64,000 nt of DNA, taken from positions 372,001 to 436,000 of the forward strand of contig OZ251247.1 in the NCBI GenBank assembly GCA_965240325.2, written 5' to 3'. A program made the translations under genes and the position numbers. Positions 1,971-61,237 of this stretch are shown in pieces. The notes beneath the pieces were generated by a model. That model did not search any database. It had not been told where the DNA came from and saw nothing but the letters and a program-made list of their open reading frames with translations. Source of the stretch: Rebecca billardiae RCC1528. Its lineage: Eukaryota; Protista; Haptophyta. Positions within the stretch are counted from its first letter, which is position 1, and each line of letters starts with the position of its first letter.

Positions 1971-3507
1971 TTAGTGGCGTCCGCCGACAGCCGTCACCGC
2001 CAAGTCAGCGCCGCTGCCTGACCGAGCTGTGCATGCCGCCGCTGCAGTGGTCGATAGCAGTCGGCGGCGGCGAGCAGCCTCGGGCAGGCGCGTGCGCGCT
2101 TCTCGCGAGTCCGCGCACGGGGCGGCGGGCGGCAGCTGCTTGATGCGCGTGGAGTCGGTGCGGACGGGCCGACCCTCCGCCAAGCTCACGCCGAGGCCGA
2201 GGCTGGCATTGCTCTGGCCGCGTGCGTGCACGCAGCCGCCAGAGCCGAGGACGTGTGCAGGTAGCGGCACGCGCGTGGGCATGGGCACAAAGCGGGGTGT
2301 CTGCCCAAGCCCGAGCTGGCCGTACGCATTGCGCCCGAACGTGTGCACGCTGCCGTCTGCACCCAACACCGCGCTGCACTGGTCGCCAGCGCACGCGCGC
2401 ACGGCGCGCACGCCTACAAGGGCCTCGGTGCGCGCGGGAAGGCGCCACCGAGAGCGATCGCGCTGTCGAGGCTGGCCACGGCGGCACTCACCAAACGAGT
2501 GCACAGCGCCCGCTGCGTCCACCACCAGGCTGTGCGCAAAGCCCGCGCTCACGTGCACGGCGCGCACTCCCTCCAGCGCCTCGATGCGCCTCGGCGTGCG
2601 CTCATCCTGCTCGTCGCCGTGGCCGAAAAGGCCGCCCCATCCGCTGCCGCACGAGTACACGCCGCCATGCGCAGAGAGCAGCAGCGTGTATGCACCACCC
2701 GCGGCCACGCCGCCCACGCGCACGCCGTCCAGCGCCTCGATGCGCGTCGGCTCCCACCGCTTCTCCGTGTCGCCGTGGCCGAGCTGGCCGCAGTAGTTGC
2801 TGCCCCAGCTCTACGCGCAGCCAGCGGCGGTGCGCGCGAGGCTGTGCGTGCTGCCGGCCGAGATGCCCACCACGGCCGCAGCGCGTGTGAGAGCGATCGG
2901 CGCGAAAGAACGCCGCTCCTCCCTGTCCCCCAGCCCCAGCTGGCAGCTGTCGTTGTCGCCGCAGCCGTACACGGCGCCGGCCTCCCTCAGCGCGAGCAGG
3001 TGGGCAAAGCCAGCGGCCACGGAGCACACGCGCACCGCGGACAGCGACACCACGCGCGTCGGCACACACACCCGACGAGGGGCGTCGTGGCCCAGCGCGG
3101 CGGACACCCTTCCTCATCCTCGCCGCACCAATGTGCAGCCCGCCCCCGCCGTCCACAAACGCGCTGAAGTAGTAACTGGCTGCGATGACGGCCGCCTGCG
3201 CGCGAGCGCAGGCGAGCACGCGATCGCGCGCGAAGAGCTCCTCCGTCCAGGTGCGCACATCCGGGGGCAGCGTCGCCGGCAGCGCGCGATCGTGTCCGCG
3301 CGCGCGCGCGAGCTCGCGCAGCGCGCGCTCGACCGGCGAGCACCCGCCGGGCGGCGCGGCGCGGAAGAGGGGCGAGGCGGCGTTGGCTGCGGCGAGGTCG
3401 GCGGCGGAGAGGGCTTGCGCGAGCAGGATGCGCTCGATCACCTCCACGGGCAGCCCCGCAGCCCGCGGTGCCGCCGACTCCTCCGAGCTGACCGCGGCAG
3501 CCATCAT
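1971..3507 (-). pseudogene. F-box/RCC1-repeat gene copy 1, disrupted; the only copy on the minus strand
   Basis: F-box-like GLPVEVIERILLAQALSAADLAAANAASPLFR followed by RCC1 blades. Frameshift near 3125-3135 (LHI+gg+CGE versus consensus LHTCGE). TAC-to-TAG nonsense at 2811-2813 (CA*SWGSNYCGQLG versus CAYSWG in paralogs). Confidence 0.88.
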
Positions 3508-3605
3508 GTTGCGACAAGGCGCCGGCCGTGCAGAGGGAGCCCCGCTCGCTCGGCAGCGGGCTGAACCTCGGCGCGCCTTGCTCCTCCATCGCTCCGACCG
3601 CGGGG

Positions 3606-5905: not shown

Positions 5906-7405
5906 ATGGCCAGCACGGAGCAGGCGCACGCGCGCCGCCTCGCGCTCGACGACCTGCCACCCGAGGTGCTCGGCCGCATCGTCGTGTGGCTGCCGCCGTG
6001 CGACCTCGCCAGCCTGAACGGCACCTCGCGCCTCTTCCGCGCCGCGCCGCCCGGCGGGTGCTCGGCGGTCGAGCGCGCGCTGCGCGAGCGCGCGCGCGCA
6101 CGCGGGCACGAGTGCGCGCTGCCGCCGTCGCTGCCCGCGGGCGTGTGCACGTGGACGGAGGAGCTGTTTCTGCGCGAGCGCCTGCTCGAGCGCGTGCGTG
6201 TGCACGCATCCCCGGTTGCGATGGGCGCATGTCCGGGTGACGTGCCCTCCGGCTTCAGCGCGTTTGTGGACGCGGAGGGCGGGCTGCACACGTGCGGCGA
6301 GGAGGAGGAGGAGGACGAGGACTGGGAGCCGACGGGCGAGGTTCGAGCGCACGTGGCCACCGGTCACGCGAAAGGGCTGGAGGTGTACGTGCCGACGCGC
6401 GTGCCCTCGCTCTTCGCGGTGCGCGTTGTCGCGGTGGCGGCTGGCTGTGCCCATCTGCTCGCGCTGAGCGACACCGGCGTCGTGTACGGCTGCGGCAGCA
6501 ACGGGTACGGCCAGCTGGGGCTGGGCCACACGGAGGAGCAACGCGCATTCGCTCTCGTCGGGCTACCCGTGAATCAACCCGTCGTGTGCATCGTTGCAGG
6601 CAACGTGCACAGCCTCGCGCTCACCGCCGCGGGCTGCGCGTACAGCTGGGGCCACAACTTCTACGGCCAGCTCGGCCACGGCGACACGGAGGAGCGGTGG
6701 GAGCCGACGCGCATCGAGGCGCTGGACGGCGTGCGCGTGGGCGGGGTGGCCGCGGGTGGTCGACACACGCTACTGCTCTCTGCCCACGGCGCCGTCTACT
6801 CGTGCGGCCACGGCGTGCATGGCCAGCTGGGCCACGGCGACCAGCGTGATCAGCACACGCCGAGGCGCATCGAGGCGCTCGCGGGCGTGCGCGCCGTGCA
6901 CGTGAGCGCGGGCTGTGCGCACAGCCTGGTGGTGGACAGCGAGGGGGCGGTGTACTCGTTTGGGCTCGGTCGGCATGGCTTGCTCGGGCACGGTGACACG
7001 CACGAGCAGCTCACGCCGAGGCGGATCGACTCCCTCGCGGGTGTGCGCATCGTGCACGCGTGGGCAGGCGCAGGCAGCAGCGCGGTGGTGTGTGCGGACG
7101 GCAGCGTGCACACGTTTGGGAACAACACCAACGGCGAGCTGGGGCTTGGCGTCGCTGCTGCTGCCGTGCCCCTCCCGCAACGCGTGCACGCTCTCGCGCA
7201 CACCCGCGTTGTGCGCTGCGCCATGGGCGGTCACGCAGCGCTGTACGTGGCGTCGGACGGCAGCGTGTACTCGTGCGGGGCTCACACGGCAGCGCTCGGC
7301 CTCGGGCTGAGTGCTGCCGGCGCGCCCCCGGAGGTGCGGTCGGTGCGGACACCCACGCACATCGAGCGGCTGCCGTGCGTGCACCTGGAGGCAGGCTCGG
7401 CGTGA
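5906..7405 (+). CDS. F-box/RCC1-repeat protein copy 2 (499 aa)
   Basis: LDDLPPEVLGRIVVWLPPCDLASLNGTSRLFR F-box motif; repeated VxAGxxHxLxL...VYxxGxNxxGQLGxG RCC1 blades; no introns. Confidence 0.92.
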   Translation: MASTEQAHARRLALDDLPPEVLGRIVVWLPPCDLASLNGTSRLFRAAPPGGCSAVERALRERARARGHECALPPSLPAGVCTWTEELFLRERLLERVRVHASPVAMGACPGDVPSGFSAFVDAEGGLHTCGEEEEEDEDWEPTGEVRAHVATGHAKGLEVYVPTRVPSLFAVRVVAVAAGCAHLLALSDTGVVYGCGSNGYGQLGLGHTEEQRAFALVGLPVNQPVVCIVAGNVHSLALTAAGCAYSWGHNFYGQLGHGDTEERWEPTRIEALDGVRVGGVAAGGRHTLLLSAHGAVYSCGHGVHGQLGHGDQRDQHTPRRIEALAGVRAVHVSAGCAHSLVVDSEGAVYSFGLGRHGLLGHGDTHEQLTPRRIDSLAGVRIVHAWAGAGSSAVVCADGSVHTFGNNTNGELGLGVAAAAVPLPQRVHALAHTRVVRCAMGGHAALYVASDGSVYSCGAHTAALGLGLSAAGAPPEVRSVRTPTHIERLPCVHLEAGSA

Positions 7406-11209: not shown

Positions 11210-12679
11210 ATGGCCAGCACGGCACAGGCGCACGCGCGTCGCCTCGCGCTCGGCGATCTGCCTCCTGAGGTGCTCGACCGCATCATCTCGCTCCTGCTGC
11301 CGCGCGACCTCGCCAGCCTGAACGCCACCGCGCGTCTCTTCCACGCCGCGCCTCCCGGCGGGTGCTCGGCGGTCGAGCGCGCGCTGCGCGAGCGCTCGTG
11401 TGCGCGCGGGCACGCGCGCGCGCTGCCGGTGTCACTGCCCTCCGGCGTGCGCACGTGGACGGAGGAGCTGCTCGTGCGCGAGCGCGTACTCGAGCTCGCA
11501 TGCGTTCACGCATCCCCGGTCGCATGCGGTGGCAACTTCAGCGCGTTTGTGGACGCGGAGGGCGGGCTGCACACGTGCGGCGAGGAGGCGGTGTGGGACG
11601 AGGGCGACGGGCAGTTGACGGTCGAGTACGTGGCGCCTCTGGCCGTGGACCACGCAGACGCCCCGCGCCTGCCAACCCGCGTGTCCTCGCTCAGCGCAGT
11701 GCGCGTGGTCGCGGTTGCCGCTGGCGATCGCCACCTGCTCGCGCTGAGCGAGGCACGCGCCGTGTACGGCTGCGGCAACAACTACTTCGGCCAGCTCGGG
11801 CTGGGGGACAAGAACGAGCGGCGGTCGTTCGCTGTAATCGGCACCCTTCGGGACGAACTCGTCGTGGGCATCGCAGCCGGCTATGTCCAGAATCTCGCGC
11901 TCAGCGCCGATGGCCGCGCGTACAGCTGGGGCTACAACAACGACGGCCAGCTCGGCCAGGGCGACACGGAGGACCGGTGGGAGCCGACGCGCATCAAGGC
12001 GCTGGACGGCGTGCGTTTGGGTGGCGTGGCCGCGGGTGGTGACCACGCGCTGCTTTTCTCCGCCCAAGGCGCCGTCTACTCGTGCGGCAGCGGGAGCGAC
12101 GGCCATCTCGGCCACGGCGACCGGCAGGATCAGCACACGCCGAGGCGCATCGAGGCGCTCGCGGGCGTGCGCGCCGTGCACGTGAGCGCGGGCTGTGCGC
12201 ACAGCCTGGTGGTGGACAGCGAGGGGGCGGTGTACTCGTTTGGGCTCGGCCGGCATGGCCTGCTCGGGCACGGTGACACGCACGAGCAGCTCACGCCGAG
12301 GCGGGTCGACTCCCTCGCGGGTGTGCGCATCGTGCACGCGTGTGCAGGCGCAGACTGCAGCGCGGTGCTGGGCGCGGACGGCAGCGTGCACACGTTTGGG
12401 AGCAACACCAACGGCGAGCTGGGGCTGGGCGTCGCTGCTACTGCCGTGCCCCTCCCGCAACGCGTGCACGCTCTCGCGCACACCCGCGTTGTGCGCTGCG
12501 CCATGGGCGGTCACGCAGCGCTGTACGTGGCGTCGGACGGCAGCGTGTACTCGTGCGGGGCTCACACGGCAGCGCTCGGCCTCGGGCTGACTCGTGCCAC
12601 CTCGCAGGGAGCTCTGCAGACGCCTACGCGGATCGCAGAGCTGCCGCGCGTGGACACAGGTGAGGCTGAGTCGGCGTGA
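11210..12679 (+). CDS. F-box/RCC1-repeat protein copy 3
   Basis: Starts MASTAQAHARRLALGDLPPEVLDRIISLL, homologous to copy 2; RCC1 blades; 3' third nearly identical to copy 2. Confidence 0.92.
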   Translation: MASTAQAHARRLALGDLPPEVLDRIISLLLPRDLASLNATARLFHAAPPGGCSAVERALRERSCARGHARALPVSLPSGVRTWTEELLVRERVLELACVHASPVACGGNFSAFVDAEGGLHTCGEEAVWDEGDGQLTVEYVAPLAVDHADAPRLPTRVSSLSAVRVVAVAAGDRHLLALSEARAVYGCGNNYFGQLGLGDKNERRSFAVIGTLRDELVVGIAAGYVQNLALSADGRAYSWGYNNDGQLGQGDTEDRWEPTRIKALDGVRLGGVAAGGDHALLFSAQGAVYSCGSGSDGHLGHGDRQDQHTPRRIEALAGVRAVHVSAGCAHSLVVDSEGAVYSFGLGRHGLLGHGDTHEQLTPRRVDSLAGVRIVHACAGADCSAVLGADGSVHTFGSNTNGELGLGVAATAVPLPQRVHALAHTRVVRCAMGGHAALYVASDGSVYSCGAHTAALGLGLTRATSQGALQTPTRIAELPRVDTGEAESA

Positions 12680-39609: not shown

Positions 39610-41133
39610 ATGGGGGCGGCAGCACCCGCGTCATCGCCCGACGAGCATGCTAAAGAGGCGCACCCGGGAGCGCGGCTGCTGACCGACCTGCCGTCTGAGC
39701 TGGTCTCGTGCCTGTTGGCCCACCTCGGCTGTGCGCGTGACCTCGCCGCCGCCAACGCCACTTCGCGCCTCTTCCGCGGCGCGCCCGGCGAGCGCTCGCC
39801 GGTCGAGCACGCGCTGCGCGAGCGCGCGCGCGCGCGCGGGCGCGATCGCGCGTTGCCGCCGACGCTACCCGTGGGCGTCTGCACGTGGACGGAAGAGCTC
39901 TTCGACCGCGAGCGCGTGCTCGAGCTCGTGCGCGCGCACGCGAACGTCGTCGCCGCCGGCGGGGTCGACGAGGATATCTGCTTCAGCGCGTTTGTGGACG
40001 CGGAGGGCGGGCTGCACACGTGCGGCGAGGAGGAGGTGCTGGACGCGGCCACCGGGCGATACTTCGGCGGGCATCGCCCGAACGTGGCAAGCGGCTGCCC
40101 AGGCATGCAGGCAGTGCGCGTGCCCACGCTCGTGCCCTCGCTGTCCGCGGTGCGCGTGGTCGCGGTGGCCGCCGGGCAGTCCCACCTGCTCGCGCTGAGC
40201 GATGCTGGGACGGTGTACGCGTGCGGCGACAACATGCGCGGCGAGCTCGGGCTGGGGGACGTGCAGACGCGGCGTTCGTTCGTGCCGATCAGCCACTTGC
40301 GCGGTGCTGCCGTCGAGGGCATCTCGGCCGGCCACAACCACAGCCTCGCGCTCACCGCAGAGGGGTGTGCGTACAGCTGGGGCAGCAACTCCTGGGGCCA
40401 GCTCGGCCACGGTGACACGGAGGACCGGTGGGAGCCGGCGCGCATCGAGGCGCTGGACGGCGTGCGCGTGGGCGGCGTGGCGGTGGGACTGGGCTACACG
40501 CTGCTGCTCTCGTCGCGGGGTGATGTCTACTCCTGCGGCCATGGCGCCGGGCAACAGCTCGGCCACGGCGAGCTGCAGGATCAGCACACGCCGAAGCGCA
40601 TCGAGGCGCTCGCGGGCGTGCGCGCCGTGCACGTGAGCGCGGGCGAATGCCACAGCCTTGTGGTGGACGCAGCGGGCCGCGTGCATGCGTTTGGGTTAGA
40701 AAACGGTGGCGTCCCCGGGCGTAGTGACCGTGCCGCCCAGCCGGTGCCCACGCCCGTCGCGGCCCTTGCAGGCGTGCATGCAGTGCGCGCCAGCGCCGGT
40801 GCGATCTGCAGCGCGGTGCTGGGCGCGGACGGCAGCGTGCACACGTTTGGGGCCAACGCGTTTGGTCAGCTCGGGCTCGACACGACCACCAGGGCGGCTG
40901 CCCCTGGGCGAGTGAGCGCCCTCGCCCATTCGCGCGTGTGCCAGTGCACGTTCGGCCAGGCCTACACGCTGTTCGTCATGGCGGACGGCGCTGTGTACGT
41001 GTGCGGCAAGCGGCTGGCCGCGCTCGGCCTCGGCGTGCGGCGCGAGCCGGTCAGCTCGAGGACACCGCTGGTGCCGCTCCAGCGCGTGGCGCAGCTGCCT
41101 CCTCTGTACTCGCCGGCACGCTGCGCTGAGTGA
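39610..41133 (+). CDS. F-box/RCC1-repeat protein copy 8
   Basis: LTDLPSELVSCLLAHLGCARDLAAANATSRLFR, RCC1 blades. Confidence 0.92.
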   Translation: MGAAAPASSPDEHAKEAHPGARLLTDLPSELVSCLLAHLGCARDLAAANATSRLFRGAPGERSPVEHALRERARARGRDRALPPTLPVGVCTWTEELFDRERVLELVRAHANVVAAGGVDEDICFSAFVDAEGGLHTCGEEEVLDAATGRYFGGHRPNVASGCPGMQAVRVPTLVPSLSAVRVVAVAAGQSHLLALSDAGTVYACGDNMRGELGLGDVQTRRSFVPISHLRGAAVEGISAGHNHSLALTAEGCAYSWGSNSWGQLGHGDTEDRWEPARIEALDGVRVGGVAVGLGYTLLLSSRGDVYSCGHGAGQQLGHGELQDQHTPKRIEALAGVRAVHVSAGECHSLVVDAAGRVHAFGLENGGVPGRSDRAAQPVPTPVAALAGVHAVRASAGAICSAVLGADGSVHTFGANAFGQLGLDTTTRAAAPGRVSALAHSRVCQCTFGQAYTLFVMADGAVYVCGKRLAALGLGVRREPVSSRTPLVPLQRVAQLPPLYSPARCAE

Positions 41134-41380: not shown

Positions 41381-42874
41381 ATGGCGCCATCGGCGAAGCA
41401 TGGCGAGGCGCACCCTGGGGCGCTGCGGCTGGCCGACCTGCCGTCCGAGCTGATCTCGCGCCTGCTGCTCCACCTCGACAACGCGCGTGACCTCGCTGCC
41501 GCCAACGCCACGGGGCGCCTCTTCCGCGGCGAGCCTGGCGAGCGCTCGCCGGTCGAGCACGCGCTGCGCGACCGCGCTCGTGCTCGCGGGCACGCGCGCG
41601 TCCTGCCGACCGAGCTGCAGGCGGCCGTGTGCAGCTGGAGAGAGGAGCTCTTTGCTCGCGAGCTCGTGCTCGAGCTCGCGAAAGCGCACCGGAACATCGT
41701 GGACGTTGGCTCTTCCGCTGTGGGTCGGTTTGGTGTGCCCAAGGAACACTCTTACTTCTTCAGCGCGTTTGTTGACGCGGAGGGCGGGCTGCACACGTGT
41801 GGTGAGGAGGAGGCGCGGGACGAGCACGGCCGGCTGCCCGACGAGTTCCGTGCGCACGCCGCCATCGGCCACGGCGTCACCAGTGCGCTGCGCGTGCCGA
41901 CGCGCGTCGCCTCGCTCAGCGCAGTGCGCGTGCGCTCCGTGGCCGCTGGCTGCCACCATCTGCTCGCGCTGAGCGAGGCGGGCACCGTGTACGGCTGCGG
42001 CTACAACGGGTACGGCCAGCTTGGGCTGGGTGACGATAAGAGGCGGCGATCGTTCGCACTGGTGAATGCGTTGCGGCATGAAGCCGCCGTGTGCATCGCA
42101 GCTGGCGTCATCCACAGTCTCGCGCTCACCGCCGCTGGCTGCGCGTACAGCTGGGGTGACAACCGCAGCGGCCAGCTCGGCCACGGCGACAAGAAGGACC
42201 GGTGGGAGCCGACGCGCATCGAGGCGCTGGATGGCGTGCGCACCGGTGGCGTGGCATCAGGCGGCGCCCACACGCTGCTGCTCTCGCTCGACGGCGCCGT
42301 CTTCTCGTGCGGCTGGGGCCGCGTTGGCGTGCTCGGCCACGGCGACGAGCAGGATCAGCACACGCCGAGGCGCATCGAGGCGCTCGCGGGCGTGCGCGCC
42401 GTGCACGCGAGCGCGGGCAGTGGGCACAGTCTAGTGGTGGACGCGACGGGCGGCGTGCACTCGTTTGGGGCGGGCAACACGGGCACGTGGGACGCCCATT
42501 GGCTCTCCCAGCTCACACCTAGGTGCATCGGCGTGCACGCCGTGCGCGCCAGCTGCGGCTTGTGCTGCAGCGCGGTGCTTGGCGCGGGTGGCAGCGTGTA
42601 CACATTCGGGGACAACCGATGTGGCCAGCTGGGGACTGCCGCCCACACGCTGTTGGCCACTCCTTGGCAGGTCGCCCTCGCCAATACGCGCGTGCTCCAG
42701 TGCGCGCTCTGCGAGACCCACGCGCTGTTTGTGACGGCGGACGGCGCTGTGTATGCGTGTGGCATGCAGTCGGCCGCGCTCGGCCTGGGCATGCGGCGCG
42801 AGCCACTCACGACACAGCCAGTGCCGCTCCAGCGCGTGACGCAGCTGCCGCCCCTTGCAGGCACGCTCCCCTGA
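41381..42874 (+). CDS. F-box/RCC1-repeat protein copy 9
   Basis: LADLPSELISRLLLHLDNARDLAAANATGRLFR, RCC1 blades. Confidence 0.92.
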   Translation: MAPSAKHGEAHPGALRLADLPSELISRLLLHLDNARDLAAANATGRLFRGEPGERSPVEHALRDRARARGHARVLPTELQAAVCSWREELFARELVLELAKAHRNIVDVGSSAVGRFGVPKEHSYFFSAFVDAEGGLHTCGEEEARDEHGRLPDEFRAHAAIGHGVTSALRVPTRVASLSAVRVRSVAAGCHHLLALSEAGTVYGCGYNGYGQLGLGDDKRRRSFALVNALRHEAAVCIAAGVIHSLALTAAGCAYSWGDNRSGQLGHGDKKDRWEPTRIEALDGVRTGGVASGGAHTLLLSLDGAVFSCGWGRVGVLGHGDEQDQHTPRRIEALAGVRAVHASAGSGHSLVVDATGGVHSFGAGNTGTWDAHWLSQLTPRCIGVHAVRASCGLCCSAVLGAGGSVYTFGDNRCGQLGTAAHTLLATPWQVALANTRVLQCALCETHALFVTADGAVYACGMQSAALGLGMRREPLTTQPVPLQRVTQLPPLAGTLP

Positions 42875-42957
42875 GCACTCGCGGCGCGCGGTATCAGCCA
42901 CCATGCGCGGGTGACGGCGATGGTCTCGGCGGCCCTGGGTCCAGTCACGTCTCGGAT

Positions 42958-43229
42958 ACAACGAGCACGGGCAGCTGGGGCTCGGCGCCGAGCGTGGGTG
43001 TGCGCTGCTGCCAGCGCGCGGCGACACCCTTATGCACCCGCCCGTGCTCGGCGTCTCGCTCGGCGACACCCACGCCCTATTCGTGACAGCTGGCGGCGCT
43101 GTGTACGCATGCGGCATGCTGTCGGCAGCACTCGGCCTGGGCATGCGGCGCGAGCCACGCATCAGGACACGGCCCGTGCCGGTCCAGCGAGTGACGCAGC
43201 TGCCGCCCCTTTCGCGCATGCTTCCCTGA
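42958..43229 (+). pseudogene. Isolated 3' fragment of an RCC1 gene (copy 10)
   Basis: Nearly identical to 55293-55563 (NEHGQLGLG...LPPLSRMLP*); the 5' part is absent. Confidence 0.9.
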
Positions 43230-45148
43230 GCACTCGCGCACGGCGCAGCGCGATATCATCCGCGCCATGCACGGGTGACGATGATGGCTCCGGTCGGGGC
43301 GGTCCTGTCACTGGGTCCAGTCACGTCAGGTGTATCGTAGCGATCGTACTACTAGGGACGGAAGGCGCCCTGCTGCCGCTGGTCCAACTACTGTACAGCA
43401 CCGCTCCGCCACCGAGTCCGGAGCGAACCGCCGGACGAGTGACGACCAAGCCGCGACGCTGCTATGCGACCAACCGCCATCCAATATTCGCCGCATCCCG
43501 CTCGGCCGAGAGAGAGATCGATGGCATCCGCGGCGACGACGCACGGGCGTGGCGGGGCGCACTCGGGAGCGCTGATGCTGACCAACCTGCCGCCCGAGCT
43601 GATCTCGCGCCTGATGATCCACCTCGACAGCGCGCGTGACCTCGCCGCCGCCAACGCCGCCTCGCGCCTCTTCCGTGGCGCGCCCGGCGAGCGCTCGCCG
43701 GTCGAGCACGCGCTTCGCGAGCGCGCGCACGCTCGCGGCCACGCTGACGCGCTGCCCACCGAGCTGCCGGCGGGCGTGCGCACGTGGTCCGAAGAGCTGT
43801 TTGCGCGCGAGCGACTGCTCGAGGTCGCGCACGCGCACCGGAACGTCGTGACCGCCGGCGCATTCTTCGACGTCGCTAGCTTCAGCGCGTTTGTGGACGC
43901 GGAGGGCGGGCTGCACACGTGCGGCGAGGAGGAGGCAGAGGACGAGGACGGGTGGCCACTGCGCTGCGCGCACGCCGCTATCGGGCATGGCGTGGACGCA
44001 GGCACACGGTCTGTGCTCGTGCCGTCGCGTGTCACCTCGCTCAGCGCGGTGCGCATGTGCTCCGTGGCTGCAGGCGAGTCCCACCTGCTCGCGCTGAGTG
44101 ATGTTGGGACTGTGTACGGCTGCGGCCACAACCGCTGCGGGCAGCTCGGGCTAGGCGACACGCAGGAGCGGCGCTCGTTTGCCCTCGTCGACGCCTTGCA
44201 GGCCGAAGACGTCGTGGGTGTTACTGCAGGCGGCACCCACAGCCTCGCGCTCACCGCCGCTGGGTGTGTGTACAGCTGGGGCTGGAACCACTACGGCCAG
44301 CTCGGCCACGGCGACACGGAGGACCGGTGGGAGCCCACGCGCATCGAGGCGCTGGACGGCGTGCGCGTCGGTGCCTTGGCCGCGGGGTCTTGGCACACGC
44401 TGCTCCTGACGACGCACGGCGCCGTCTACTCGTGCGGCAGCGGACGGCACGGCCAGCTCGGCCACGGCGACCAGCTGGACCAGCGCACGCCGAGGCACAT
44501 TGAGGCTCACGCTGGCGTGCGCGGCGTGCACGTGAGCGCGGGCCGTGAGCACAGCCTGATGGTGGACGCGGACGGCGGCCTTCATTCGTTTGGCCGTGCC
44601 TCAGGGGGTGGGCTAGGGCATACCAGCAGCCGCCCTGAGACCAGCCCGAGGCGCGTCGAGACGCTCTCTGGTGTGTGTGCAGTGCGCGCCAGCGCTGGCT
44701 CCCACAGTAGCGCGGTGCTGGGCGCGGACGGCAGCGTGCACACGTTTGGGTTCAACGCTCTGGGCGTGCTCGGTCATCCCACGAGCTCTACGCCAGCTTG
44801 CCCGCATGAGCTCCTTCCACGGTGCGTGGCTGCCCTGTCTCGGGAGCGCGTGGTGTGCGTCTCTCTGGGCCTACGGTCAGCCTTCTTCGTGACGGCTGAT
44901 GGCCGTGTGTACTACTCGTCAAATCCTGCAATTCGCCGCGAGCACCGCGCGGCCGGAATGCGCTCGCTGAAGCGCGCGCGTCAGAGGCGGGGAGCCTCCG
45001 TCGCCCCGAAGGCGCGTGCGACGCGGGCGCGAGCGCGCGCGCGCGGGCGCGCGCGCGGGCGAGTGATCTGGCTGACGCCCGGCCGCCCACCCGCGCCCCA
45101 CCACCCCCGCGCCCCGCAACCGCAGCGGCGTCAGCCAGATCTGCCCCG

Positions 45149-47714
45149 ATGCGGCGCACGCGAGCACAGCCGGGCTCTCCATCGGCATCTCGCTCTGCGA
45201 CGCCCAAGAAGAGGGAGCGTGATGCGAAGACGCGCAACGCGCGCCGAGAGCAGGCCAAGCTGGACTCGGCGAAGAAAAGGGGCCCCGTGCCAGAGAAGCG
45301 GCAGCGCCGAGACTCGCTCCCCCGAAACGCGCACGCCGAGGAGGCGTACGCCGGCGAGGCGCTGGCAGCTGACATGATGCTCAAGCTCGCGGGCGCGAAG
45401 AAGCAGGCGGAGAAGAAGAAGAAGCAGAAGGTGGAGGTGGCGGCGCGGGGGGACGACGACGACGAGGAGGAGGAGGAGGAGGAGGCGGCGGCGGCGGAGG
45501 CGGAGGCGGATGCGGCCGGCGACGACGAGGAGGAGGACGATGACGAGGAGGAGGAGGAGGCGGAGGCGGAGGCGGAGGCGGAGGCGGAGGGGGAGGGGGA
45601 GCAGGAGGAGGAGGAGGAGGAGGAGGAGGAGGAGGAGGAGGAGGAGGAGGAGGAGGAGGAAGAGGAGGAGGACGGCGCCGAGGAGTCCGACGAGGACTCG
45701 CAGGACAAGCACGACGTCAGGCGGTACGGCGGCCGCAACATCGACGGCGTCGAGAAGACCGACGGCACGAGGATCAGGTTGGAGATGACTGCGCCGAAGG
45801 ACATGCCCTCCTTGGGCGGCAAGGAGATAGTGACGGCGTACATCGGCTACCGCTCAGGCCGATTCTTCGACCCCAACGCGCGGCAGGTGACCGTCGCGTT
45901 CCGCAACCGAAGCCTCTACTGGGGACGGCCCAACGCGCGCACGGTGAGGGCGCTCCTCACACTGGTCGGACAGGTGTGTGAGGCGAAGGTCGGGGCCATG
46001 AGCGAGGCGCGGCCGCACCACAGCGCCAAGCTCTACGCGCTGCCGGCGCCGACTAAGAACGGGCGCGGGCCGAACCTGAAGGCAATGCTCCGCGAGCTCG
46101 ACACGGAGACGACCTTCCAGTTGTACGTCCAGGCGTCGGGGTCGATCGAGGTCGTGGTAGGGCCGACAGTTGCCATGTACGCCGAGGAGAAGGCGGAAGC
46201 TGAGGTGCAGCTGGCGACGGCGGCGAGTAAGCGCGAGCATGAGGCCGCGATGCGTGCGAGTGATGCGAAGCGCGCCGAGCTGCTGCGCGAACGCGCCAAG
46301 CTCAGGAACGCCAAGCTGCAGAAGCAGGTCGACGGTGTCGTCGTCGGCGGCGGCGGCGGCGCGCGTGGCAGCGGTGGCGGCCGCAGCGGCGGCCTGGACG
46401 ACGGCTGCGACGAGGAGGACCTCGGCACGCCCATCGGGGGGCGGCAGTACGCGATTTACCTGTATCCGATGCATGCGACGTCGGGCGGGGTGCGGCTGCA
46501 ATTCCTCCGCATCGACGGCGAGCAGCTCGCCAGCCTCAGCGACGCCGAGCACGCGGTGCGCACTGCACAGCCCTCCGGGCATCTGTTCGGGCCGCTGCCC
46601 GGCACGCCGCTGGAGCTCTCTCTGCTGCATGTGGCCTCGGGCGGCAAGATCGTGGCCGCCGGCCCGCACGAGATCTTGACGAGGGGCTCTGACCTGTCGA
46701 AGCAGTACACGCGCAACCCGCGCGAGAGCGGGCTCCACGTGCTCCACCTCGGGCTCCAGCCGGCACCTGCGCCCGCAGCACCTGCGCCGTCGGCTGTTGC
46801 CGGTGGAAAGAATCGGCGGGCGGCGGCGGGCGGCCTGACGCTAGCGCAGCGGCTCGCCGCGCAGACGGTCGACAACGCGCCGGATGCGCCACGCGCGAGC
46901 CTCGGTGGGCGCAGCACCGATTACCGCCCGACGTACGACCCGCACGGCAACGGGTCTCCGCCGACGCCGCTCGGTTCGTCCCCCGCGGAGCAGCTCAACG
47001 ATATGCAGAACATGAACGACCTGAGGAGCATGGTCGGCACCTGGTTCGGCAGCAAGTGGAAGCACGACTCGGCGCTCGAGAGTTTTGCTGTCAAGGAGCT
47101 GATCAACTCCGGCCTGCATTACGACATCCTCGCCCGCCCGGAACACGCGGGCCAGCGGCTCGACCAGGTCCGCTTCGAATGGCCGCCACACAACCGCCCG
47201 CGCGACAAGAACGTACACGGTGTGTGCGCGGCGCGCGGCGCGCGCGCGCGCCAGAGACCACGCGCCCTCCTCTCACACGCTACATCTACGCACGCGTGCG
47301 AACCCCTGCCCCGCAGCGTCACACGCGGCAGCGCCGCCGACCCAGTACCCGCCGGCGGCGCAGGCATTCGCAGCGCTCGGCGCTGGCGCGATGGCGCCGA
47401 GGGCGCCTTACCCACAGCCTGGCGGGGCGCCCGCCGTGCCGCCTCACCTCTCCTTCAGCGAGCGGTCCGCGCGCTTTGCGCGCGCCATCGCGGAGCTGAA
47501 AATGAATGCCGACTTTGACACCGAGATGAAGATGTACCTCGCGCAAGCAGCTGCTACGGAGAACAGCATGCCTACCCTGAGCGATCCGCAGGCGCGCTCT
47601 CTATTCGCGCACAGCGTCGGCCCCTCCTCCTCACCTGTCGCGGTCGGCTCGCAGTACAACGACTACCGTGGACGTGGTGACGACGACGATTTCACGGGCG
47701 GCAGCAACCCCTGA
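45149..47714 (+). CDS. Transposon accessory protein of unknown function (about 820 aa; basic N-terminus, poly-Glu tract); probable intron 47220-47316
   Basis: Long GC3-biased ORF starting at an ATG inside the left TIR. A g|GTGTGT...CCGCAG| splice puts the 47317-47714 block (MNADFDTEMKMYLAQ...GSNP*) in frame. Confidence 0.75.
45465..45672 (+). repeat. (GAG)n / (GAGGCG)n coding repeat giving poly-Glu and EA tracts
   Basis: Seen directly. Confidence 0.95.
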
Positions 47715-47744
47715 TCGCCATCGTCAGTCGATGATGCTGCTGAC

Positions 47745-47930
47745 AACATTATAAACAGTGACGGCGATTTCAGCTGCTACATCCGGGCGTCATTGAAAAT
47801 CGGTCAATAAATACGCGTATTATTATAATAATATTGTTAAATAATATATTGTAATATGTATCATCGTCCGATATTATTATAAAATATATATTTAACCGTG
47901 CGCTGTGACTTAGCCATATAGTTTGAGTAA
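47745..47930. terminator. AT-rich region between the convergent transposon genes; probable bidirectional 3'-end/polyadenylation region
   Basis: Sharp AT enrichment with AATAAA near 47807, between the stops at 47714 (+) and 48008 (-). Confidence 0.5.
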
Positions 47931-48007
47931 GTGACGGTCGAGTCCGCTGACGGATCGCAGACGGCAGAGTCCGAGATTACATACGACGAATATCGTGGCG
48001 CCTACGA

Positions 48008-49069
48008 CTACACACTGTAGCCACAACGCGCAAAGTTGCGTGCCGCGCTGGCCGCCGGGTGGTCGCTCGTGAAGCAGCACGCAAAGGCAAGCGCCAGTGC
48101 TTCTGTCAGCTCCATCGAGTTGAGCGTGCGGCCGTGGCGACGCCAGTACGCCTTAAACGTGTTGAAGGCGAACTCGATCGGCGAGTCGATCGGCGAGTAC
48201 GGTGCCAGGTAGAGGATGCGCCCGCCCTTCATCGCCACGGCACGACGCAGCAGCTTCTCCTCTGCGTGGTGAGTGCGGCAGTTGTCCAGGACAAGGATCG
48301 ACCGCGGCTGCGGCCACGGCTGCATGTTGTCGTCAATCATGTCGATGATCGCCTCCATGAAGCGCTCTGTGTTGAAGGCGCCCTGGGCCCATCGGAAGTC
48401 GACGAAGCCCGTGACGTCGTACAACGCCAACACCGAGATCATCTTGCCCCGGTGCCAGATCTCAGTCACCGTCACGCGCGAGCCGACAGCACCCCATCCA
48501 CGCTTGCGCCGCATCGTGCGACTGTCCATGGCCGTCTCGTCGCCGAAAAGCAGTTGAGCCCGCGTGATCACGTTCTCTGCGATCGCTGCCCAGTACAGCA
48601 TCCGGTTGAACTCGTCCCGCTGCTGCGCCTTCCTCTGCATCTTCTTCAACGAGATGTGGGCAGCGAGAAGGGCCCCGTGGACGTACTGCCTGGAGTAGAT
48701 CACCCGGGTACGACGCCACAGCTCGTCGCACATCTCGTCCAGGAAGAGCCATGGGTGCTCCGCGACGATGGCGAGCAGCGTCTTCTGGTGCTCCGGCGGC
48801 ATCTTCTTCCGGGCTGGCTTGCGGGGGGCGAAGTCCACCAGGCCGGTATCGTTGTAGCGCTTGATCGTCTTCTGTACAGTGCGCCTGGACACGCCCGTGC
48901 GGAAGGTGGCAACGAGCTCAGCGATTGTGGCTGTGCCGATATTGTGCACGAAGAACATGACCACGATCGCCTGCAACAGGTCGACCCCGAGCCGCCCCCC
49001 AGCGCGGCCGCGCGGCCGCCCACGCGCACGGCCCGGGCCGACTGAACGTGCGCCTCCAACGTGCCGCAT
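48008..49069 (-). CDS. IS630/Tc1-like DDE transposase (DD36E), 353 aa
   Basis: HTH region (VSRRTVQKTIKRY, HPWLFLDEMCDEL). Catalytic motifs LLFGDET, SILVLDNCRTHH and LYLAPYSPIDSPIEFAF, with 36 residues between the second D and the E. The ATG lies inside the right TIR. Confidence 0.93.
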   Translation of the reverse strand: MRHVGGARSVGPGRARGRPRGRAGGRLGVDLLQAIVVMFFVHNIGTATIAELVATFRTGVSRRTVQKTIKRYNDTGLVDFAPRKPARKKMPPEHQKTLLAIVAEHPWLFLDEMCDELWRRTRVIYSRQYVHGALLAAHISLKKMQRKAQQRDEFNRMLYWAAIAENVITRAQLLFGDETAMDSRTMRRKRGWGAVGSRVTVTEIWHRGKMISVLALYDVTGFVDFRWAQGAFNTERFMEAIIDMIDDNMQPWPQPRSILVLDNCRTHHAEEKLLRRAVAMKGGRILYLAPYSPIDSPIEFAFNTFKAYWRRHGRTLNSMELTEALALAFACCFTSDHPAASAARNFARCGYSV

Positions 49070-50144
49070 CGGGGCAGATCTGGCTGACGCCGCTGCGGTT
49101 GCGGGGCGCGGGGGTGGTGGGGCGCGGGTGGGCGGCCGGGCGTCAGCCAGATCACTCGCCCGCGCGCGCGCCCGCGCGCGCGCGCTCGCGCCCGCGTCGC
49201 ACGCGCCTTCGGGGCGACGGAGGCTCCCCGCCTCTGACGCGCGCGCTTCAGCGAGCGCATTCCGGCCGCGCGGTGCTCGCGGCGAATTGCAGGATTTGAC
49301 GAGTAGTATGCGTGCGGCCAGCAGACGGCTGCGCTCGGCCTTGGGCGGGTGAGCTTCGACGCTGATGACGAGGATAGTGCGGACGAGCATGACGAAGTCA
49401 CCACGCCCACACTCATGGAGCAGCTCCCGTCACTCTACGCTGCGCGCTGCTGACGGGCGGGTTGGGAGTGCTGCTGCCTGTGGGCGGCAGTGGCGTGGCC
49501 CGCAGCCTTATTCGTGCCAGCATACGCCATGCTCCAGGCCACGACGACTCACGACTGTCATCATGGATCATCCGTAGTGGTGCGACCTTGAACAGAACTT
49601 TGACTGCGCGTGAGGCGGAATGACGCACGCGCGGGATGATGACGATCCGAGCTAGCACTGCTCCTGCGGTCCAAGGGCTTTGTCCGCCCGAATTAAGTAA
49701 TTGTTTAAATAAGCTGATGTGTTCATCACAGATCACTGTTCACCAGAAAACTTTTATTTATACGTACAGTTGTGTGACGTTGAATTCGGATGCTTAAATG
49801 TTTCGGACGCGGAAAGGCTCGGGCGCTGAAAGCGCCCGAGCCCACCCTTGAGGTCCGGAGGCGCACACCGTACCCGCTTGCCGTGCTTGATTTGAAAGTT
49901 TCACGGCGACCCCGCGTTCTCCCGCATATACAATCGCATCAAACATGAGACGGCTTAGAATAGTGAGTAGGCATCTCCCACAATCTCGCGGGAATCTAGA
50001 ACGGCGCGGGGGTATCTCAGCGTACTGCAAGGTATCTTCGTACGCTGAAACATTCATGCGCTCAAATGGTCAGCCATGTGTTTCGGCGACGACGAATCGC
50101 GCGCCGCGATTTAGGCTAGAATTCCCTAATGCACTTCAGACTAC

Positions 50145-52345: not shown

Positions 52346-53858
52346 ATGGCATCCGCGGCGACGACGCACGGGCGTGGCGGGGCGCACTCGGGAGCGCTGA
52401 TGCTGCCCGACCTGCCGCCCGAGCTGATCGCGCGGCTGCTGCTTTGTTTCGACAGCGCGCGTGACCTCGCCGCCGCCAACGCCGCCTCGCGCCTCTTCCG
52501 CGGCGCGCCCGGCGAGCGCTCGCCGGTCGAGCACGCGCTGCGCGAGCGCGCGCGCGCTCGCGGCCACGCTGACGCGCTGCCCACTGAGCTGCCGGCGGGC
52601 GTGCGCACATGGCTGGAGGCGCTGCTAGCGCGTGAGCGACTGGTCGAGATCGCGCACGCGCACCGGAACGTCGTCGCCGCCGGCGCATTCCTCGACGTCG
52701 CTTGCTTCAGCGCGTTTGTGGACGCGGAGGGCGGGCTGCACACGTGCAGCGAGGAGGAGGAGGTGCTGGATGATCGCTTCCAGTGGACGGGCGAGTATCG
52801 GCTGCACGCGTCCATCGGCCACCCAGATGCGCCGAACGTGTGCTTGCCGACGCGCGTCGCCTCGCTCAGCGCAGTGCGCGTGCGCTCCGTGGCCGCTGGG
52901 CGGGACCACCTGCTCGCGCTGAGCGCCGCCGGCACCGTGTACGGCTGCGGCATCAACGAGTACGGTCAGCTGGGGCTGGGGGACGCCGACGAGCGGCGGT
53001 CGTTTTGCGGAGGTAGACGTGCGTTCAGGTGGGTTGGTCGGGGCTATCGCCGCGGCCGCTTGCCACAGCATCGCGCTCACCGCCGCTGGGTGTGTGTACA
53101 GCTGGGGCCGCAACGAGTGCGGCCGGCTCGGCCACGGCGACACGAAGGAGCGGCGGGAGCCGACGCGCATCGAGGCGCTGGACGGCGTGCTCGTGGGTGG
53201 CGCGTCCGCGGGCGAGGCGCACACGCTGCTGCTCTCGGTGCAGGGCGCCGTCTACTCGTGCGGTTGGGGCTACAAGGGCCGTCACGGCCACGGCAACAAG
53301 AAAAGTCGGCGCACGCCGAGGCGCATCGAGGCGCTCGCGGGCGTGCGCGCCGTGCACGTGAGCGCGGGCAGGCTGCACAGCCTGGTGGTGGACGCGGCGG
53401 GTGGTGTGCACTCTTTTGGATGTGGGGACGGGGGCTGCCTGGGCCACGGGGACGAGGCCAAGCAAACACTGCCCAAGCGTATAGAGGCGTTGGCGGGTGT
53501 GCACGCCGTGCGCGCGTGCGCTGGCTCAGGCGGCAGCGCAGTGGTCGGCGCTGACGGCAGCGTGCACACGTTCGGGGACAACGAGCAAGGGCAGCTGGGG
53601 CTCGGCGCCGAGCGTGAGCACGCGCGGCTGCCCGCGCGCGTTGACACCCTCTCTCCCCAGCCCGCGCTCGGCTGCTCGCTCTGCGGCACCCACGCGCTGT
53701 TCTTGACGGTGGAAGGCGCTGTGTACGCATGTGGCATGCAGTCGGCAGCACTCGGCCTCGGGCTGGCGATCAACGCCAACGAGGAGGGTGGGCGCTCTGC
53801 GCAGCCGGCGCCGCAGCGCGTGACGCAGCTGCCGCCCCTTGCGGGCACGCTTCCCTGA
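52346..53858 (+). pseudogene. F-box/RCC1-repeat gene copy 12 with a +1 frameshift (possibly a sequencing error)
   Basis: TTTT at 53003-53006; deleting one T gives RRSFAEVDVRSGGLVGAIAAAACHS and fuses ORFs 52220..53554 and 53019..53858. Confidence 0.85.
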
Positions 53859-54063: not shown

Positions 54064-55563
54064 ATGGCATCCGCGGCGACGACGCACGAGCGCGACGAGG
54101 CGCACGTGGGAGCGCGGCTGCTGACCGACCTGCCGTCCGAGCTGGTCTCGTGCCTGTTGGCCCACCTCGGCTGTACGCGTGACCTCGCCGCCGCCAACGC
54201 CGCCTCGCGCCTCTTCCGCGGCGCGCCCGGCGGGCGCTCGCCGGTCGAGCACGCGCTGCGCGAGCGCGCGCGCGCGCGGGGGCGTGCGTGCGCGCTGCCC
54301 ACCGAGCTGCCGGCGGGCGTGCGCTCATGGCTGGAGGAGCTGTTTGCGCGTGAGCGACTGGTCGAGCTCGCGCACGCGCACCGGAACGTCGTCGCCGCCG
54401 GCGCAGCCCTCGACGTCGCTAGCTTCAGCGCGTTTGTGGACGCGGAGGGCGGGCTGCACACGTGCGGCGAGGAGGAGGTGGTGGACGAGGTCTGGGGGGA
54501 GCTGCCGGGCGAGTATCGACCGTCCATGGCGATCGACCACCCAGATGCGCTGAGCGTGTGCTTGCCGACGCGCGTGGCCTCGCTGAGCGCGGTGCGCGTG
54601 TGCTCCGTGGCCGCTGGCTGCGCCCACCTGCTCGCGCTGAGCGATGCCGGCGACGTGTTCGGCTGCGGCAAGAACCACCGCGGACAGCTTGGGCTGGGCA
54701 ACGCGGAGAGGCGGTGGTCGTTTGCCCTGGTCGGCGCATTGCGAGGTCAGCTCGTCGTGATCGCGGCTCGCGGGCACCACAGCCTCGCGCTCAGCGCCGC
54801 TGGCTGTGCGTACAGCTGGGGCAGCAACGGCTGCGGCCAGCTCGGCCACGGCGACACGGAGAAGCGGTGGGAGCCGACGCGCATCGAGGCGCTGGACGGC
54901 GTGCGCGTGGGCGGCGTTGCTGCAGGTGGTGCTCACACGCTGTTCCTATCTGCGCATGGCGCCGTCTTCTCGTCCGGCGACGGCTACTTTGGCCAGCTCG
55001 GCCACGGCGACCGGCGGAATCAGCACACGCCGAGGCGCATCGAGGCGCTCGCGGGCGTGCGTGCCGTGCACGTGAGCGCGGGCACGGAGCACAGCCTGGT
55101 GGTGGACAGCGACGGGGTGGTGTACTCGTTTGGACGTGGGGACGGGGGCTGCCTGGGCCATGGGGACAAGGTCACACAACATCTGCCCAAGCGCATCGAT
55201 GCATTCGCGGGCGTGCACGCCGTGCGCGCCTGTGGCGGGCTATGCAGCAGCGCGGTGGTCGGCGCTGACGGCAGTATGCACACGTTCGGGAGCAACGAGC
55301 ACGGGCAGCTGGGGCTCGGCGCCGAGCGTGGGTGTGCGCTGCTGCCAGCGCGCGGCGACACCCTCATGCACCCGCCCGTGCTCGGCGTCTCGCTCGGCGA
55401 CACCCACGCCCTATTCGTGACAGCTGGCGGCGCTGTGTACGCATGCGGCATGCTGTCGGCAGCACTCGGCCTGGGCATGCGGCGCGAGCCACGCATCAGG
55501 ACACGGCCCGTGCCGGTCCAGCGAGTGACGCAGCTGCCGCCCCTTTCGCGCATGCTTCCCTGA
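54064..55563 (+). CDS. F-box/RCC1-repeat protein copy 13
   Basis: LTDLPSELVSCLLAHLGCTRDLAAANAASRLFR, RCC1 blades. Confidence 0.92.
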   Translation: MASAATTHERDEAHVGARLLTDLPSELVSCLLAHLGCTRDLAAANAASRLFRGAPGGRSPVEHALRERARARGRACALPTELPAGVRSWLEELFARERLVELAHAHRNVVAAGAALDVASFSAFVDAEGGLHTCGEEEVVDEVWGELPGEYRPSMAIDHPDALSVCLPTRVASLSAVRVCSVAAGCAHLLALSDAGDVFGCGKNHRGQLGLGNAERRWSFALVGALRGQLVVIAARGHHSLALSAAGCAYSWGSNGCGQLGHGDTEKRWEPTRIEALDGVRVGGVAAGGAHTLFLSAHGAVFSSGDGYFGQLGHGDRRNQHTPRRIEALAGVRAVHVSAGTEHSLVVDSDGVVYSFGRGDGGCLGHGDKVTQHLPKRIDAFAGVHAVRACGGLCSSAVVGADGSMHTFGSNEHGQLGLGAERGCALLPARGDTLMHPPVLGVSLGDTHALFVTAGGAVYACGMLSAALGLGMRREPRIRTRPVPVQRVTQLPPLSRMLP

Positions 55564-59662: not shown

Positions 59663-59707
59663 ATTCGCGCCGCATCCCGCTCGGCGGCTCGGCCGAGAGA
59701 GAGATCG

Positions 59708-61237
59708 ATGGCATCCGCGGCGACGACGCACGGGCGTGGCGGGGCGCACTCGGGAGCGCTGATGCTGACCGGCCTGCCGCCCGAGCTGATCTCGCGCCTG
59801 ATGATCCACCTCGACAGCGCGCGTGGCCTCGCCGCCGCCAACGCCGCCTCGCGCCTCTTCCGTGGCGCGCCCGGCGAGCGCTCGCCGGTCGAGCACGCGC
59901 TTCGCGAGCGCGCGCACGCTCGCGGCCACGCTGACGCGCTGCCCACCGAGCTGCCGGCAGGCGTGCGCACGTGGTCCGAAGAGCTGTTTGCGTGCGAGCG
60001 ACTGCTCGAGGTCGCGCACGCGCACCGGAACGTCGTGACCGCCGGCGGATTCCTCGACGTCGCTAGCTTCAGCGCGTTTGTGGACGCGGATGGCGGGCTG
60101 CACACGTGCGGCGAGGAGGCGCTGCGGGACGAGGACTGGGGGGAGCCGACGGGCGAGTATCGACCGTCCGTGGCGATCGACCACCCAGATGCGCTGAACG
60201 TGTGCTTGCCGACGCGCGTGGCCTCGCTCAGCGCGGTGCGCGTGTGCTCTGTGACCGCTGGCTTTGCCCACCTGCTCGCGCTGAGCGACGCCGGCACCGT
60301 GTACGGCTGCGGCGGCAACCTGCACGGCCAGCTCGGGCTGGGGGACGATGAGACGCGGCGCTCGTTCGTCGAGGTCTACCCGCTCGCGCGCGAGCTCGTC
60401 GTCTCGATCGCCGCGGGCGGCGACCACAGCAGCGCGCTCACCGCCGCTGGGTGTGTGTACAGCTGGGGCAACAACGGGCACGGCCAGCTCGGCCACGGCG
60501 ACACGGAGAAGCGGTGGGAGCCGACGCGCATCGAGGCGCTGGACGGCGTGCGCGTGGGCGGCGTTGCTGCAGGTGGTGCTCACACGCTGTTCCTATCTGC
60601 GCATTGCGCCGTCTACTCGTGCGGCGACTGCTACAACGGCCAGCTCGGCCACGGCGACCGGCGCAATCAGCACACGCCGAGGCGCATCGAGGCGCTCGCG
60701 GGCGTGCGCGCCGTGCACGTGAGCGCGGGCAATCAGCACAGCCTGGTGGTGGACGCGGAGGGTGGTGTGCATTCGTTCGGACGTGGGGACTGGGTCTGCC
60801 TGGGCCACGGGGACGAGACCACGCAACCACTGCCCAAGTGCATCGATGCATTGGCGGGTGTGCACGCCGTGCGCGCCTGTGGCGGGCTATGCAGCAGCGC
60901 GGTGGTCGGCGCGGACGGCAGCGTGCACACGTTCGGGGAAAACGAGCACGGCCAGCTGGGGCTTCGCGCCGAGCGCGAGTACGCGCTGCTGCCCGCGCGC
61001 GTCGACACCCTCTCTCCCCAGCCCGCGCTCGGCTGCGCGCTCGGCTCCACCCACGCGCTGTTCTTGACGGCGGAAGGCGCTGTGTACGCATGTGGCATGC
61101 AGTCGGCAGCACTCGGCCTCGGGCTGACGATCAACGCCAACGAGGAGGGTGGGCGCTCTGCGCAGCCGGCGCCGCAGCGCGTGACGCAGCTGCCGTCCCT
61201 CACTGGCACGCTCCACGACCGTGTGTGGCGTTCGTAG
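59708..61237 (+). CDS. F-box/RCC1-repeat protein copy 14
   Basis: LTGLPPELISRLMIHLDSARGLAAANAASRLFR, RCC1 blades. Confidence 0.92.
   Translation: MASAATTHGRGGAHSGALMLTGLPPELISRLMIHLDSARGLAAANAASRLFRGAPGERSPVEHALRERAHARGHADALPTELPAGVRTWSEELFACERLLEVAHAHRNVVTAGGFLDVASFSAFVDADGGLHTCGEEALRDEDWGEPTGEYRPSVAIDHPDALNVCLPTRVASLSAVRVCSVTAGFAHLLALSDAGTVYGCGGNLHGQLGLGDDETRRSFVEVYPLARELVVSIAAGGDHSSALTAAGCVYSWGNNGHGQLGHGDTEKRWEPTRIEALDGVRVGGVAAGGAHTLFLSAHCAVYSCGDCYNGQLGHGDRRNQHTPRRIEALAGVRAVHVSAGNQHSLVVDAEGGVHSFGRGDWVCLGHGDETTQPLPKCIDALAGVHAVRACGGLCSSAVVGADGSVHTFGENEHGQLGLRAEREYALLPARVDTLSPQPALGCALGSTHALFLTAEGAVYACGMQSAALGLGLTINANEEGGRSAQPAPQRVTQLPSLTGTLHDRVWRS

Follow-up and report, generated by a model that had tools for sequence, protein, structure and literature searches.

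F-box motifs recruit Skp1/Cullin1. The vertebrate protein FBXO24 joins an N-terminal F-box to RCC1 repeats and assembles with SKP1, CUL1 and RBX1 (PMC10932545). We analyzed an array of paralogs with the same pairing of domains in a 64,000-nucleotide (nt) stretch of the haptophyte Rebecca billardiae RCC1528 (assembly GCA_965240325.2, contig OZ251247.1, positions 372,001 to 436,000), which is called the window below. The window has a GC content of about 70% and contains 13 paralogs of roughly 490–540 residues each. All lie on the + strand except c01, which is on the − strand. A fixed set of positions in the propeller, here called the register, is hypervariable between the copies. Our interpretation, to which we assign a probability of roughly 0.65, is that these genes form a birth-and-death array of F-box-like/RCC1 proteins in which one propeller face is diversified, and that their products would be interchangeable substrate receptors of Skp1–Cullin1–F-box (SCF) ubiquitin ligases. 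FBXO24 was also found among the language-model neighbors of copy c02. It is, however, single-copy and conserved and has no hypervariable register; c02 matches it only in generic domains, and the algal family is distinguished by a conserved linker module of its own.

According to PMC8120010 (citing Thomas 2006) and PMC3719486, the F-box families of nematodes and plants are marked by lineage-specific tandem expansion, a conserved F-box and many pseudogenes, with positive selection concentrated in the substrate-recognition domain; the array resembles them in these respects. A link to pathogen defence is presented there as proposed but unproven. The recognition domains of those families are FTH, FBA, Kelch or LRR domains, whereas the present family, from a GC-rich alga, has an RCC1 propeller with its selected sites in a strict register that recurs blade by blade. 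The NWD/HNWD genes of Podospora anserina (het-d, het-e) likewise combine a conserved propeller repeat scaffold with diversifying selection at a few fixed positions per repeat; these positions lie on the interaction surface, and sequence is exchanged between paralogs (PMC1805685). They differ in being STAND/NLR-type genes whose WD40 repeats are shuffled within and between genes (PMC1805685), whereas the blades described here keep their position and the effector module is F-box-like. In its evolutionary mode, the array comes closest to the Podospora NWD WD40 genes, but its blades stay in register.

Two further comparisons concern structure. Fbw7 and Cdc4 gave the best structural matches of the N-terminal 96 residues (template-modelling score by query about 0.5 over 89–99 columns) and have the same order of F-box, helical linker and propeller, but their propeller is an eight-bladed WD40 domain that reads phosphodegrons, is conserved and is not hypervariable. 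UVR8 and the RLD domains of HERC1/2 are the closest solved propeller folds, and the register falls on Trp and Arg residues of the UVR8 interface. These proteins have no F-box, and the GWRHT motif is conserved in UVR8, whereas the equivalent positions are the most variable ones here. A full-text literature search returned no description of a hypervariable-register F-box/RCC1 family in an alga. Fast-evolving F-box adaptor families are already known from nematodes and plants; the RCC1 propeller as a recognition scaffold is new here.

A hypervariable register in the RCC1 propeller

Variability was located at a fixed register in each blade. Its first part comprises positions 1, 3 and 4 of the G-x-[N/G]-x-x-G loop after the 'YSWG' strand, and its second part the two residues of G-x-x-H, before the next strand. 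The G-x-N-x-x-G register is present in six blades and the G-x-x-H codon pair in seven. Most register loops showed 9–13 different combinations among the 13 copies. An earlier reading of this DNA from its letters alone (the sequence-only reading) had listed 13 combinations for blade 2 (SNYC to NNGH) together with sets of CG-x-N-x-x-G combinations and SAG-x-x-H pairs, and all of them were reproduced exactly. In that blade-2 example, 12 scaffold codons differ at 1.7% of nt between copies, compared with 52% for the three codons marked as variable, and the Asn/Gly codon fixed between the variable codons is invariant. The 21-nt scaffold motif given by the same reading occurs 26 times in the window; 0.02 occurrences would be expected by chance.

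Tyr, Asn, Trp, Phe, Met and Lys are enriched among the register residues, and Val, Leu, Pro and Gly are depleted. The GC content at third codon positions (GC3) is 0.78 at register codons, so that the codon preference of the genome is kept. The scaffold, described earlier as almost invariant, is so locally, in blades 2–4; over the whole propeller, the mean proportion of synonymous differences (pS) is 0.35 and that of non-synonymous differences (pN) is 0.21. The synonymous codon mismatch ranges from 0.105 (blades 3–4) to 0.41 (blades 4–5), whereas about 0.5 is expected from codon usage. Of the 30 propeller columns that vary most among 34 metagenomic homologs, all from outside the window, 25 were on the register. 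The definition of the register is therefore not circular, since independent homologs vary at the same columns.

We examined the propeller fold by domain searches and modelling. RCC1 (165–236 bits; cut-off 21.7) and WD40_RLD (224–259 bits; cut-off 150) were found by Pfam in all five copies scanned, and both were above cut-off in 44 of 44 family members, with six RCC1 repeats found by Pfam. An AlphaFold2 (AF2) model of c02, calculated from the 44-sequence alignment, had a predicted local distance difference test score (pLDDT) of 93.8 and a predicted template-modelling score of 0.92. It is a seven-bladed propeller (7 × 4 strands) with a velcro closure by N-terminal C and D strands. The nearest solved folds are UVR8 (TMt up to 0.95, 28% identity) and the RLDs of HERC1/2 (32% identity for HERC2 RLD3). 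In the DSSP string of the model, the register residues open each A-B loop and are also found within each C-D hairpin. Because strands A and C run parallel, A-B and C-D loops are placed on the same face.

In the alignment with UVR8, the two residues of G-x-x-H coincide with the W and R of the GWRHT motifs (W233/R234 and W285/R286), a position that the sequence-only reading had assigned to the interaction face. The A-B loop register was aligned with W198/R200/Y201. The UVR8 dimer interface has been documented to contain the W233/W285/W337 triad, R286 and R338, and seven of the 14 conserved tryptophans of UVR8 are in this interface (PMC4501546). Strand topology and this alignment support a placement of the register residues on one face, the one used by UVR8 for protein contacts. 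A role as UV-B receptor is not expected and was rejected, as the GWRHT tryptophans are not conserved and the Trp triad is absent.

Selection was evaluated by tree-free counts and by site models. For the counts, the Nei-Gojobori method was applied to 78 copy pairs and 30 register codons. The register pN was 0.63 and was above the scaffold pS in 78 of 78 pairs; in c02–c03, which are among the least diverged pairs, the two values were 0.335 and 0.151. Site models were fitted with purpose-written GY94/MG94 F3x4 codon code with pruning; recombination was allowed for by giving each blade its own iqtree tree. The F3x4 codon frequencies absorb the GC3 bias. In the M0 fit, branch lengths were scaled by 0.993 relative to the iqtree trees, which agrees with a matching parameterisation. 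Likelihood-ratio test (LRT) values were 114 for M2a against M1a (omega2 of 4.2 for 8% of sites), 161 for M8 against M7, and 94 for M8 against M8a (omega of 3.0 for 12% of sites). With reduced data, the LRT was 97 for the 10 intact copies only and 67 for the gap-free core blades only. Twelve data sets were simulated on these trees with the fitted M1a model; their LRT was at most 5.9, and the simulated parameters were recovered. Codons with dN/dS above 1 thus remain when recombination and base composition are allowed for, in a test of the kind that the sequence-only reading had suggested.

The register was also treated as a fixed class, with its synonymous rate set by the scaffold around it in each blade. 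Its omega was 2.45 (GY) or 2.21 (MG), with LRT values of 91–95 against omega = 1. The 22 register sites outside the list of the sequence-only reading gave an omega of 2.1–2.2 (p about 1e-12 to 1e-14). As a control, the D-A loop residues of the opposite face gave an omega of 0.44–0.53. We defined selected sites by an M8 posterior above 0.95, and 24 sites were obtained. Selected sites accounted for 20 of 132 positions in A-B or C-D loops and one of 76 in B-C or D-A loops; the remaining three are in strands, at most one residue away from a strand end. When the two kinds of loop were compared, Fisher's test gave p = 7e-4; against all other sites, it gave p = 7e-7. These results support diversifying selection on one face of the propeller, as proposed earlier: the site models reject neutrality, and 20 of the 24 selected sites are in A-B or C-D loops. 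On this face, about 30–40 loop codons change faster than synonymous sites do, and the N-terminal module and the opposite face are under purifying selection.

Codon trees built separately for the N-terminus and for each blade were mutually discordant. Copies c10 and c13 are 97.8% identical in the N-terminal module but only 58% in blades 4–5, where c10 is 91% identical to c05. Copy c10 is clearly a mosaic. The same blade is 75% identical in nt across genes, whereas the identity between different blades is 48%, no matter whether they belong to one gene or to two. Blades therefore keep their position, and exchange takes place in register between paralogs rather than by shuffling of repeats. Shuffling of repeats within a gene, as in Podospora, was ruled out, since different blades are equally 48% identical within and between genes. 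The flanks of the paralogs, even those of the closest copies, could not be aligned beyond 20–180 nt. In-register exchange keeps parts of the scaffold near-identical even at synonymous sites.

N-terminal module and possible function

The N-terminal module was compared with known F-boxes by profile and fold. The Pfam F-box-like profile matched residues 14–46 over profile positions 1–33 of 47 only, with E-values of 6e-5 to 0.16 in five copies (6e-5 for c02 and 2.6e-4 for c03). Among 44 aligned family members, 27 matched it at E ≤ 0.01 (best 2e-8). When a profile of the first ~95 residues was searched against all PDB sequences, 14 of the 16 matches were F-box chains aligned at their F-box, including FBXO22 (E 0.004), FBXW7 (0.012), AnkB, cyclin F, FBXO31, GID2 and FBH1. 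An AF2 model of the module (pLDDT 88.5) was searched with Foldseek, and the top 12 matches were all Skp1-bound F-box proteins (Fbw7, Cdc4, FBG3, Fbs1/2 and FBXO31), with alignments spanning the F-box and the helical linker. The LP.E...L core and the hydrophobic positions are invariant in all 10 intact copies. The conserved helical linker, VE.ALR.RA..RG..LP...W, is outside the Pfam F-box (c02 residues 47–100; ~6044–6205). The F-box-like motif together with the linker was found in 520 clusters at E ≤ 1e-3 among 1.84 billion representatives; full-length members have ~470–545 residues, and the others are fragments. The F-box assignment made earlier is thus sustained at the level of the family, by the 27 of 44 members, the PDB profile search and, less firmly, the AF2 fold search, but not for single copies in the window, of which the five scanned are below the Pfam cut-off.

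Each protein would accordingly begin with an F-box-like motif of three helices, continue with a helical linker and end in a seven-bladed RCC1 propeller. Skp1/Cul1 would be bound by the conserved N-terminus, and the diversified propeller face may bind different targets for ubiquitylation. New specificities may arise by point substitutions at register codons and by reshuffling of blades between paralogs. We propose the role of SCF receptor because of the analogy with the Fbw7/Cdc4 architecture, with FBXO24 in its pairing of domains and its SKP1/CUL1 binding (PMC10932545), and with the positively selected F-box families of nematodes and plants.

Several points weigh against this interpretation. 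The Pfam F-box-like scores in the five copies scanned (23.2, 21.1, 18.1, 13.4 and 12.2 bits) are all below the cut-off of 24.3, and the Foldseek matches of the N-terminal model are weak (E 0.23–1.2, probability at most 0.93), with a short helix 3. The placement on one face is derived from strand topology and homology with UVR8. When the register was given its own synonymous rate, alpha was 1.2–1.4 and beta 2.3–2.5, with a beta/alpha of 1.7–1.85 (p = 0.023–0.003), and part of the register excess could be a modest local rise in mutation rate. Synonymous divergence (dS) may be depressed by gene conversion, and the unalignable paralog flanks give no non-coding rate against which to calibrate it. 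Three of the 13 copies (c01, c10 and c11) are broken.

The family may be diversified without being SCF adaptors: the N-terminal module could serve another partner, dimerisation or localisation, and the propellers could be binders, decoys or regulators without ubiquitylation. This alternative, which we consider unlikely, agrees with the partial, sub-threshold F-box-like match, with the short helix 3 followed by a family-specific conserved helix and LP..W segment, and with the fact that the module defines its own family of 520 clusters. On the other hand, nearly all proteins returned by the profile and fold searches are Skp1-bound F-box proteins, with the F-box itself as the aligned part, and the core and hydrophobic positions do not vary in the intact copies. 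In addition, FBXO24, with the same pairing of F-box and RCC1, co-precipitates SKP1, CUL1 and RBX1 (PMC10932545).

Relaxed constraint by itself is a less probable alternative and, in our estimation, a poor one. Exposed loop x positions of RCC1 would accept any residue and be saturated in old paralogs, synonymous change in the scaffold would be held down by codon bias (GC3 0.86), and the elevated dN/dS would be an artefact. The x positions are weakly conserved in RCC1 repeats generally, as seen in the consensus of the alignment, the register pN of 0.63 is close to saturation, GC3 bias is strong, and the flanks are fully diverged while the coding pS is only 0.15–0.42. However, omega is above 1 under both GY and MG F3x4, and the register excess is also seen in the least diverged pairs such as c02–c03. 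Codon usage predicts a synonymous mismatch of ~0.5, whereas blades 3–4 show 0.105 and the motif beside the variable codons differs at 1.7% of nt. As the scaffold mismatch is far below the codon-usage expectation, the identity of the scaffold indicates shared ancestry or conversion, not codon bias. Neutral codons inside such near-identical tracts would be homogenised too. The loops of the opposite face are equally exposed, yet their omega is 0.44–0.53.

A mutational hot spot or targeted diversification, driven by sequence context or a programmed mechanism beside invariant GGCCAGCTCGG-type motifs and without selection for new amino acids, is very improbable: although the variable codons are embedded in strikingly invariant DNA and the register synonymous rate is 1.2–1.4 times background (weakening the test to p = 0.003–0.02), non-synonymous change is 1.7–1.85 times the register codons' own synonymous change, the genome's codon preference (GC3 0.78) is kept, a local mutator would not spare the invariant Asn/Gly codon between the variable codons, and no reverse transcriptase or template repeat was found among the open reading frames (ORFs) scanned.

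The targets of a diversified SCF receptor array may be viral, parasitic, transposon-derived, self/non-self or endogenous, and we regard self/non-self recognition, control of transposon proteins and a selfish, toxin-antidote-like role as no less plausible than defence. Giant viruses and parasites constantly attack haptophytes and other marine algae, and to our knowledge the innate defence genes of these algae are almost unknown. The F-box/RCC1 family is a concrete defence candidate. An immune or antiviral purpose is suggested purely by analogy. In its specific form, the germline would encode SCF receptors as an immune repertoire inside the cell, and their RCC1 face, diversified by point change and by exchange of blades between paralogs, would capture fast-evolving viral or parasite proteins for the proteasome; we consider this tentative and rather doubtful. 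If true, the array would be a propeller-based counterpart of the plant NLR-LRR or fungal NWD repertoires, wired to ubiquitylation. The propeller is also of interest for binder design, as a natural conserved seven-bladed scaffold that tolerates ~30–40 freely variable surface positions.

Gene copies, neighboring genes and relatives

The features of the array are summarized in Table 1. The sequence-only reading had counted 13 full-length paralogs plus a fragment. All 13 paralogs and the fragment are present, but intact ORFs from ATG to stop were found in only 10; the other three are the pseudogene c01, c10 with its transposon insertion and the frameshifted c11. The genes are probably intronless, as uninterrupted ORFs hold the full domain set.

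Table 1 Features of the F-box-like/RCC1 array, in window positions.
Feature	Positions	Strand	Description
c01	2118..3507	-	Pseudogene; pieces 3133-3507 (N-terminal), 2814-3071 (middle, other frame) and 2118-2810, by three-frame translation and alignment
c02	5906..7405	+	Intact, 499 aa; F-box-like module, helical linker and 7-blade RCC1 propeller; copy used for modelling
Hypervariable register example, c02 blade-2 A-B loop	6653..6664	+	Residues 250, 252 and 253 around fixed Asn 251
c03	11210..12679	+	Intact, 489 aa; c02 is the nearest copy
c04	26509..28065	+	Intact, 518 aa; basic N-terminal extension
c05	29333..30955	+	Intact, 540 aa; basic N-terminal extension
c06	33552..35150	+	Intact, 532 aa; basic N-terminal extension
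c07	35506..37056	+	Intact, 516 aa
c08	39610..41133	+	Intact, 507 aa
c09	41381..42874	+	Intact, 497 aa
C-terminal gene fragment	42951..43229	+	92 codons and stop; by tblastn, translation and identity count
c10, 5' part	43521..44912	+	464 codons, ends at transposon
Transposon in c10, IS630/Tc1-like	44913..49306	.	~4.4 kb
c10, 3' part	49307..49453	+	Last 48 codons and stop, beyond transposon
c11	52346..53858	+	+1 frameshift, TTTT run near 53003-53006
c12	54064..55563	+	Intact, 499 aa
c13	59708..61237	+	Intact, 509 aa

The defects of c01 are a frameshift, an in-frame stop (2811–2813) and a degenerate last blade. Copy c10 is interrupted between 44912 and 44913, after codon 464. The inserted element has inverted terminal repeats identical over at least 55 nt, a DDE_3/HTH transposase ORF at 48011–49390 (−) and a second long ORF at 45149–47515 (+) without a Pfam match. 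A Tyr codon is duplicated at the junction of c10 and the transposon, consistent with a TA target-site duplication. The sole defect of c11 is one extra T in a TTTT run within 52995–53012, and this copy may be a pseudogene or a homopolymer assembly error. The C-terminal fragment is identical to the tail of c12, 11 kb away, at 274 of 279 nt. Since the likeness to c12 ends exactly at the 5' end of the fragment, a recent partial duplication or an aborted conversion is indicated. The defects of c01, c10 and c11, together with this fragment, show that the array undergoes birth-and-death turnover.

Only c04–c06 carry a basic, Ala/Pro-rich extension of ~40 residues (MHEHQAHILQRMKARRLG...) ahead of the F-box-like motif (26509–26640, 29333–29460 and 33552–33680). 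This extension may serve to target or localise the proteins of one subfamily. Genes outside the family are also found within the array. An ORF at 9092–10873 (+) encodes an exostosin GT47 domain, and a search for its homologs at E ≤ 1e-10 gave none. A 1214-aa ORF at 14302–17943 (+) contains a Myb DNA-binding domain and lies in a stretch of 80–86% GC. Two long (AT)n microsatellites were found at 1044–1265 (111 copies) and 1602–1795 (98 copies), because of which the first 2 kb has only 49% GC.

The nearest full-length relative in the protein collection is 54% identical. Atlas clusters with F-box plus RCC1 are labelled mostly Haptophyta, and vertebrate FBXO24 is more distant. A viral origin was rejected: the matches in IMG/VR are generic RCC1 proteins, 27–35% identical over the propeller and without the N-terminal module. 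Sequencing run X1 was ruled out as data from the same organism; it gave six short contigs with 85–93% likeness on conserved blades (5500–11400). A homolog locus (L003; metagenomic ENA contig k141_421118) is gene-dense, has 61% GC, contains a 40%-identical member at 16393–17157 and looks cellular. On the same contig, a U-box protein is encoded 7.5 kb from the family member. Another search match, P0021 from Pseudoscourfieldia, carries a U-box plus RCC1 annotation. These two observations suggest that marine algae may combine RCC1 propellers with E3 modules of more than one kind.

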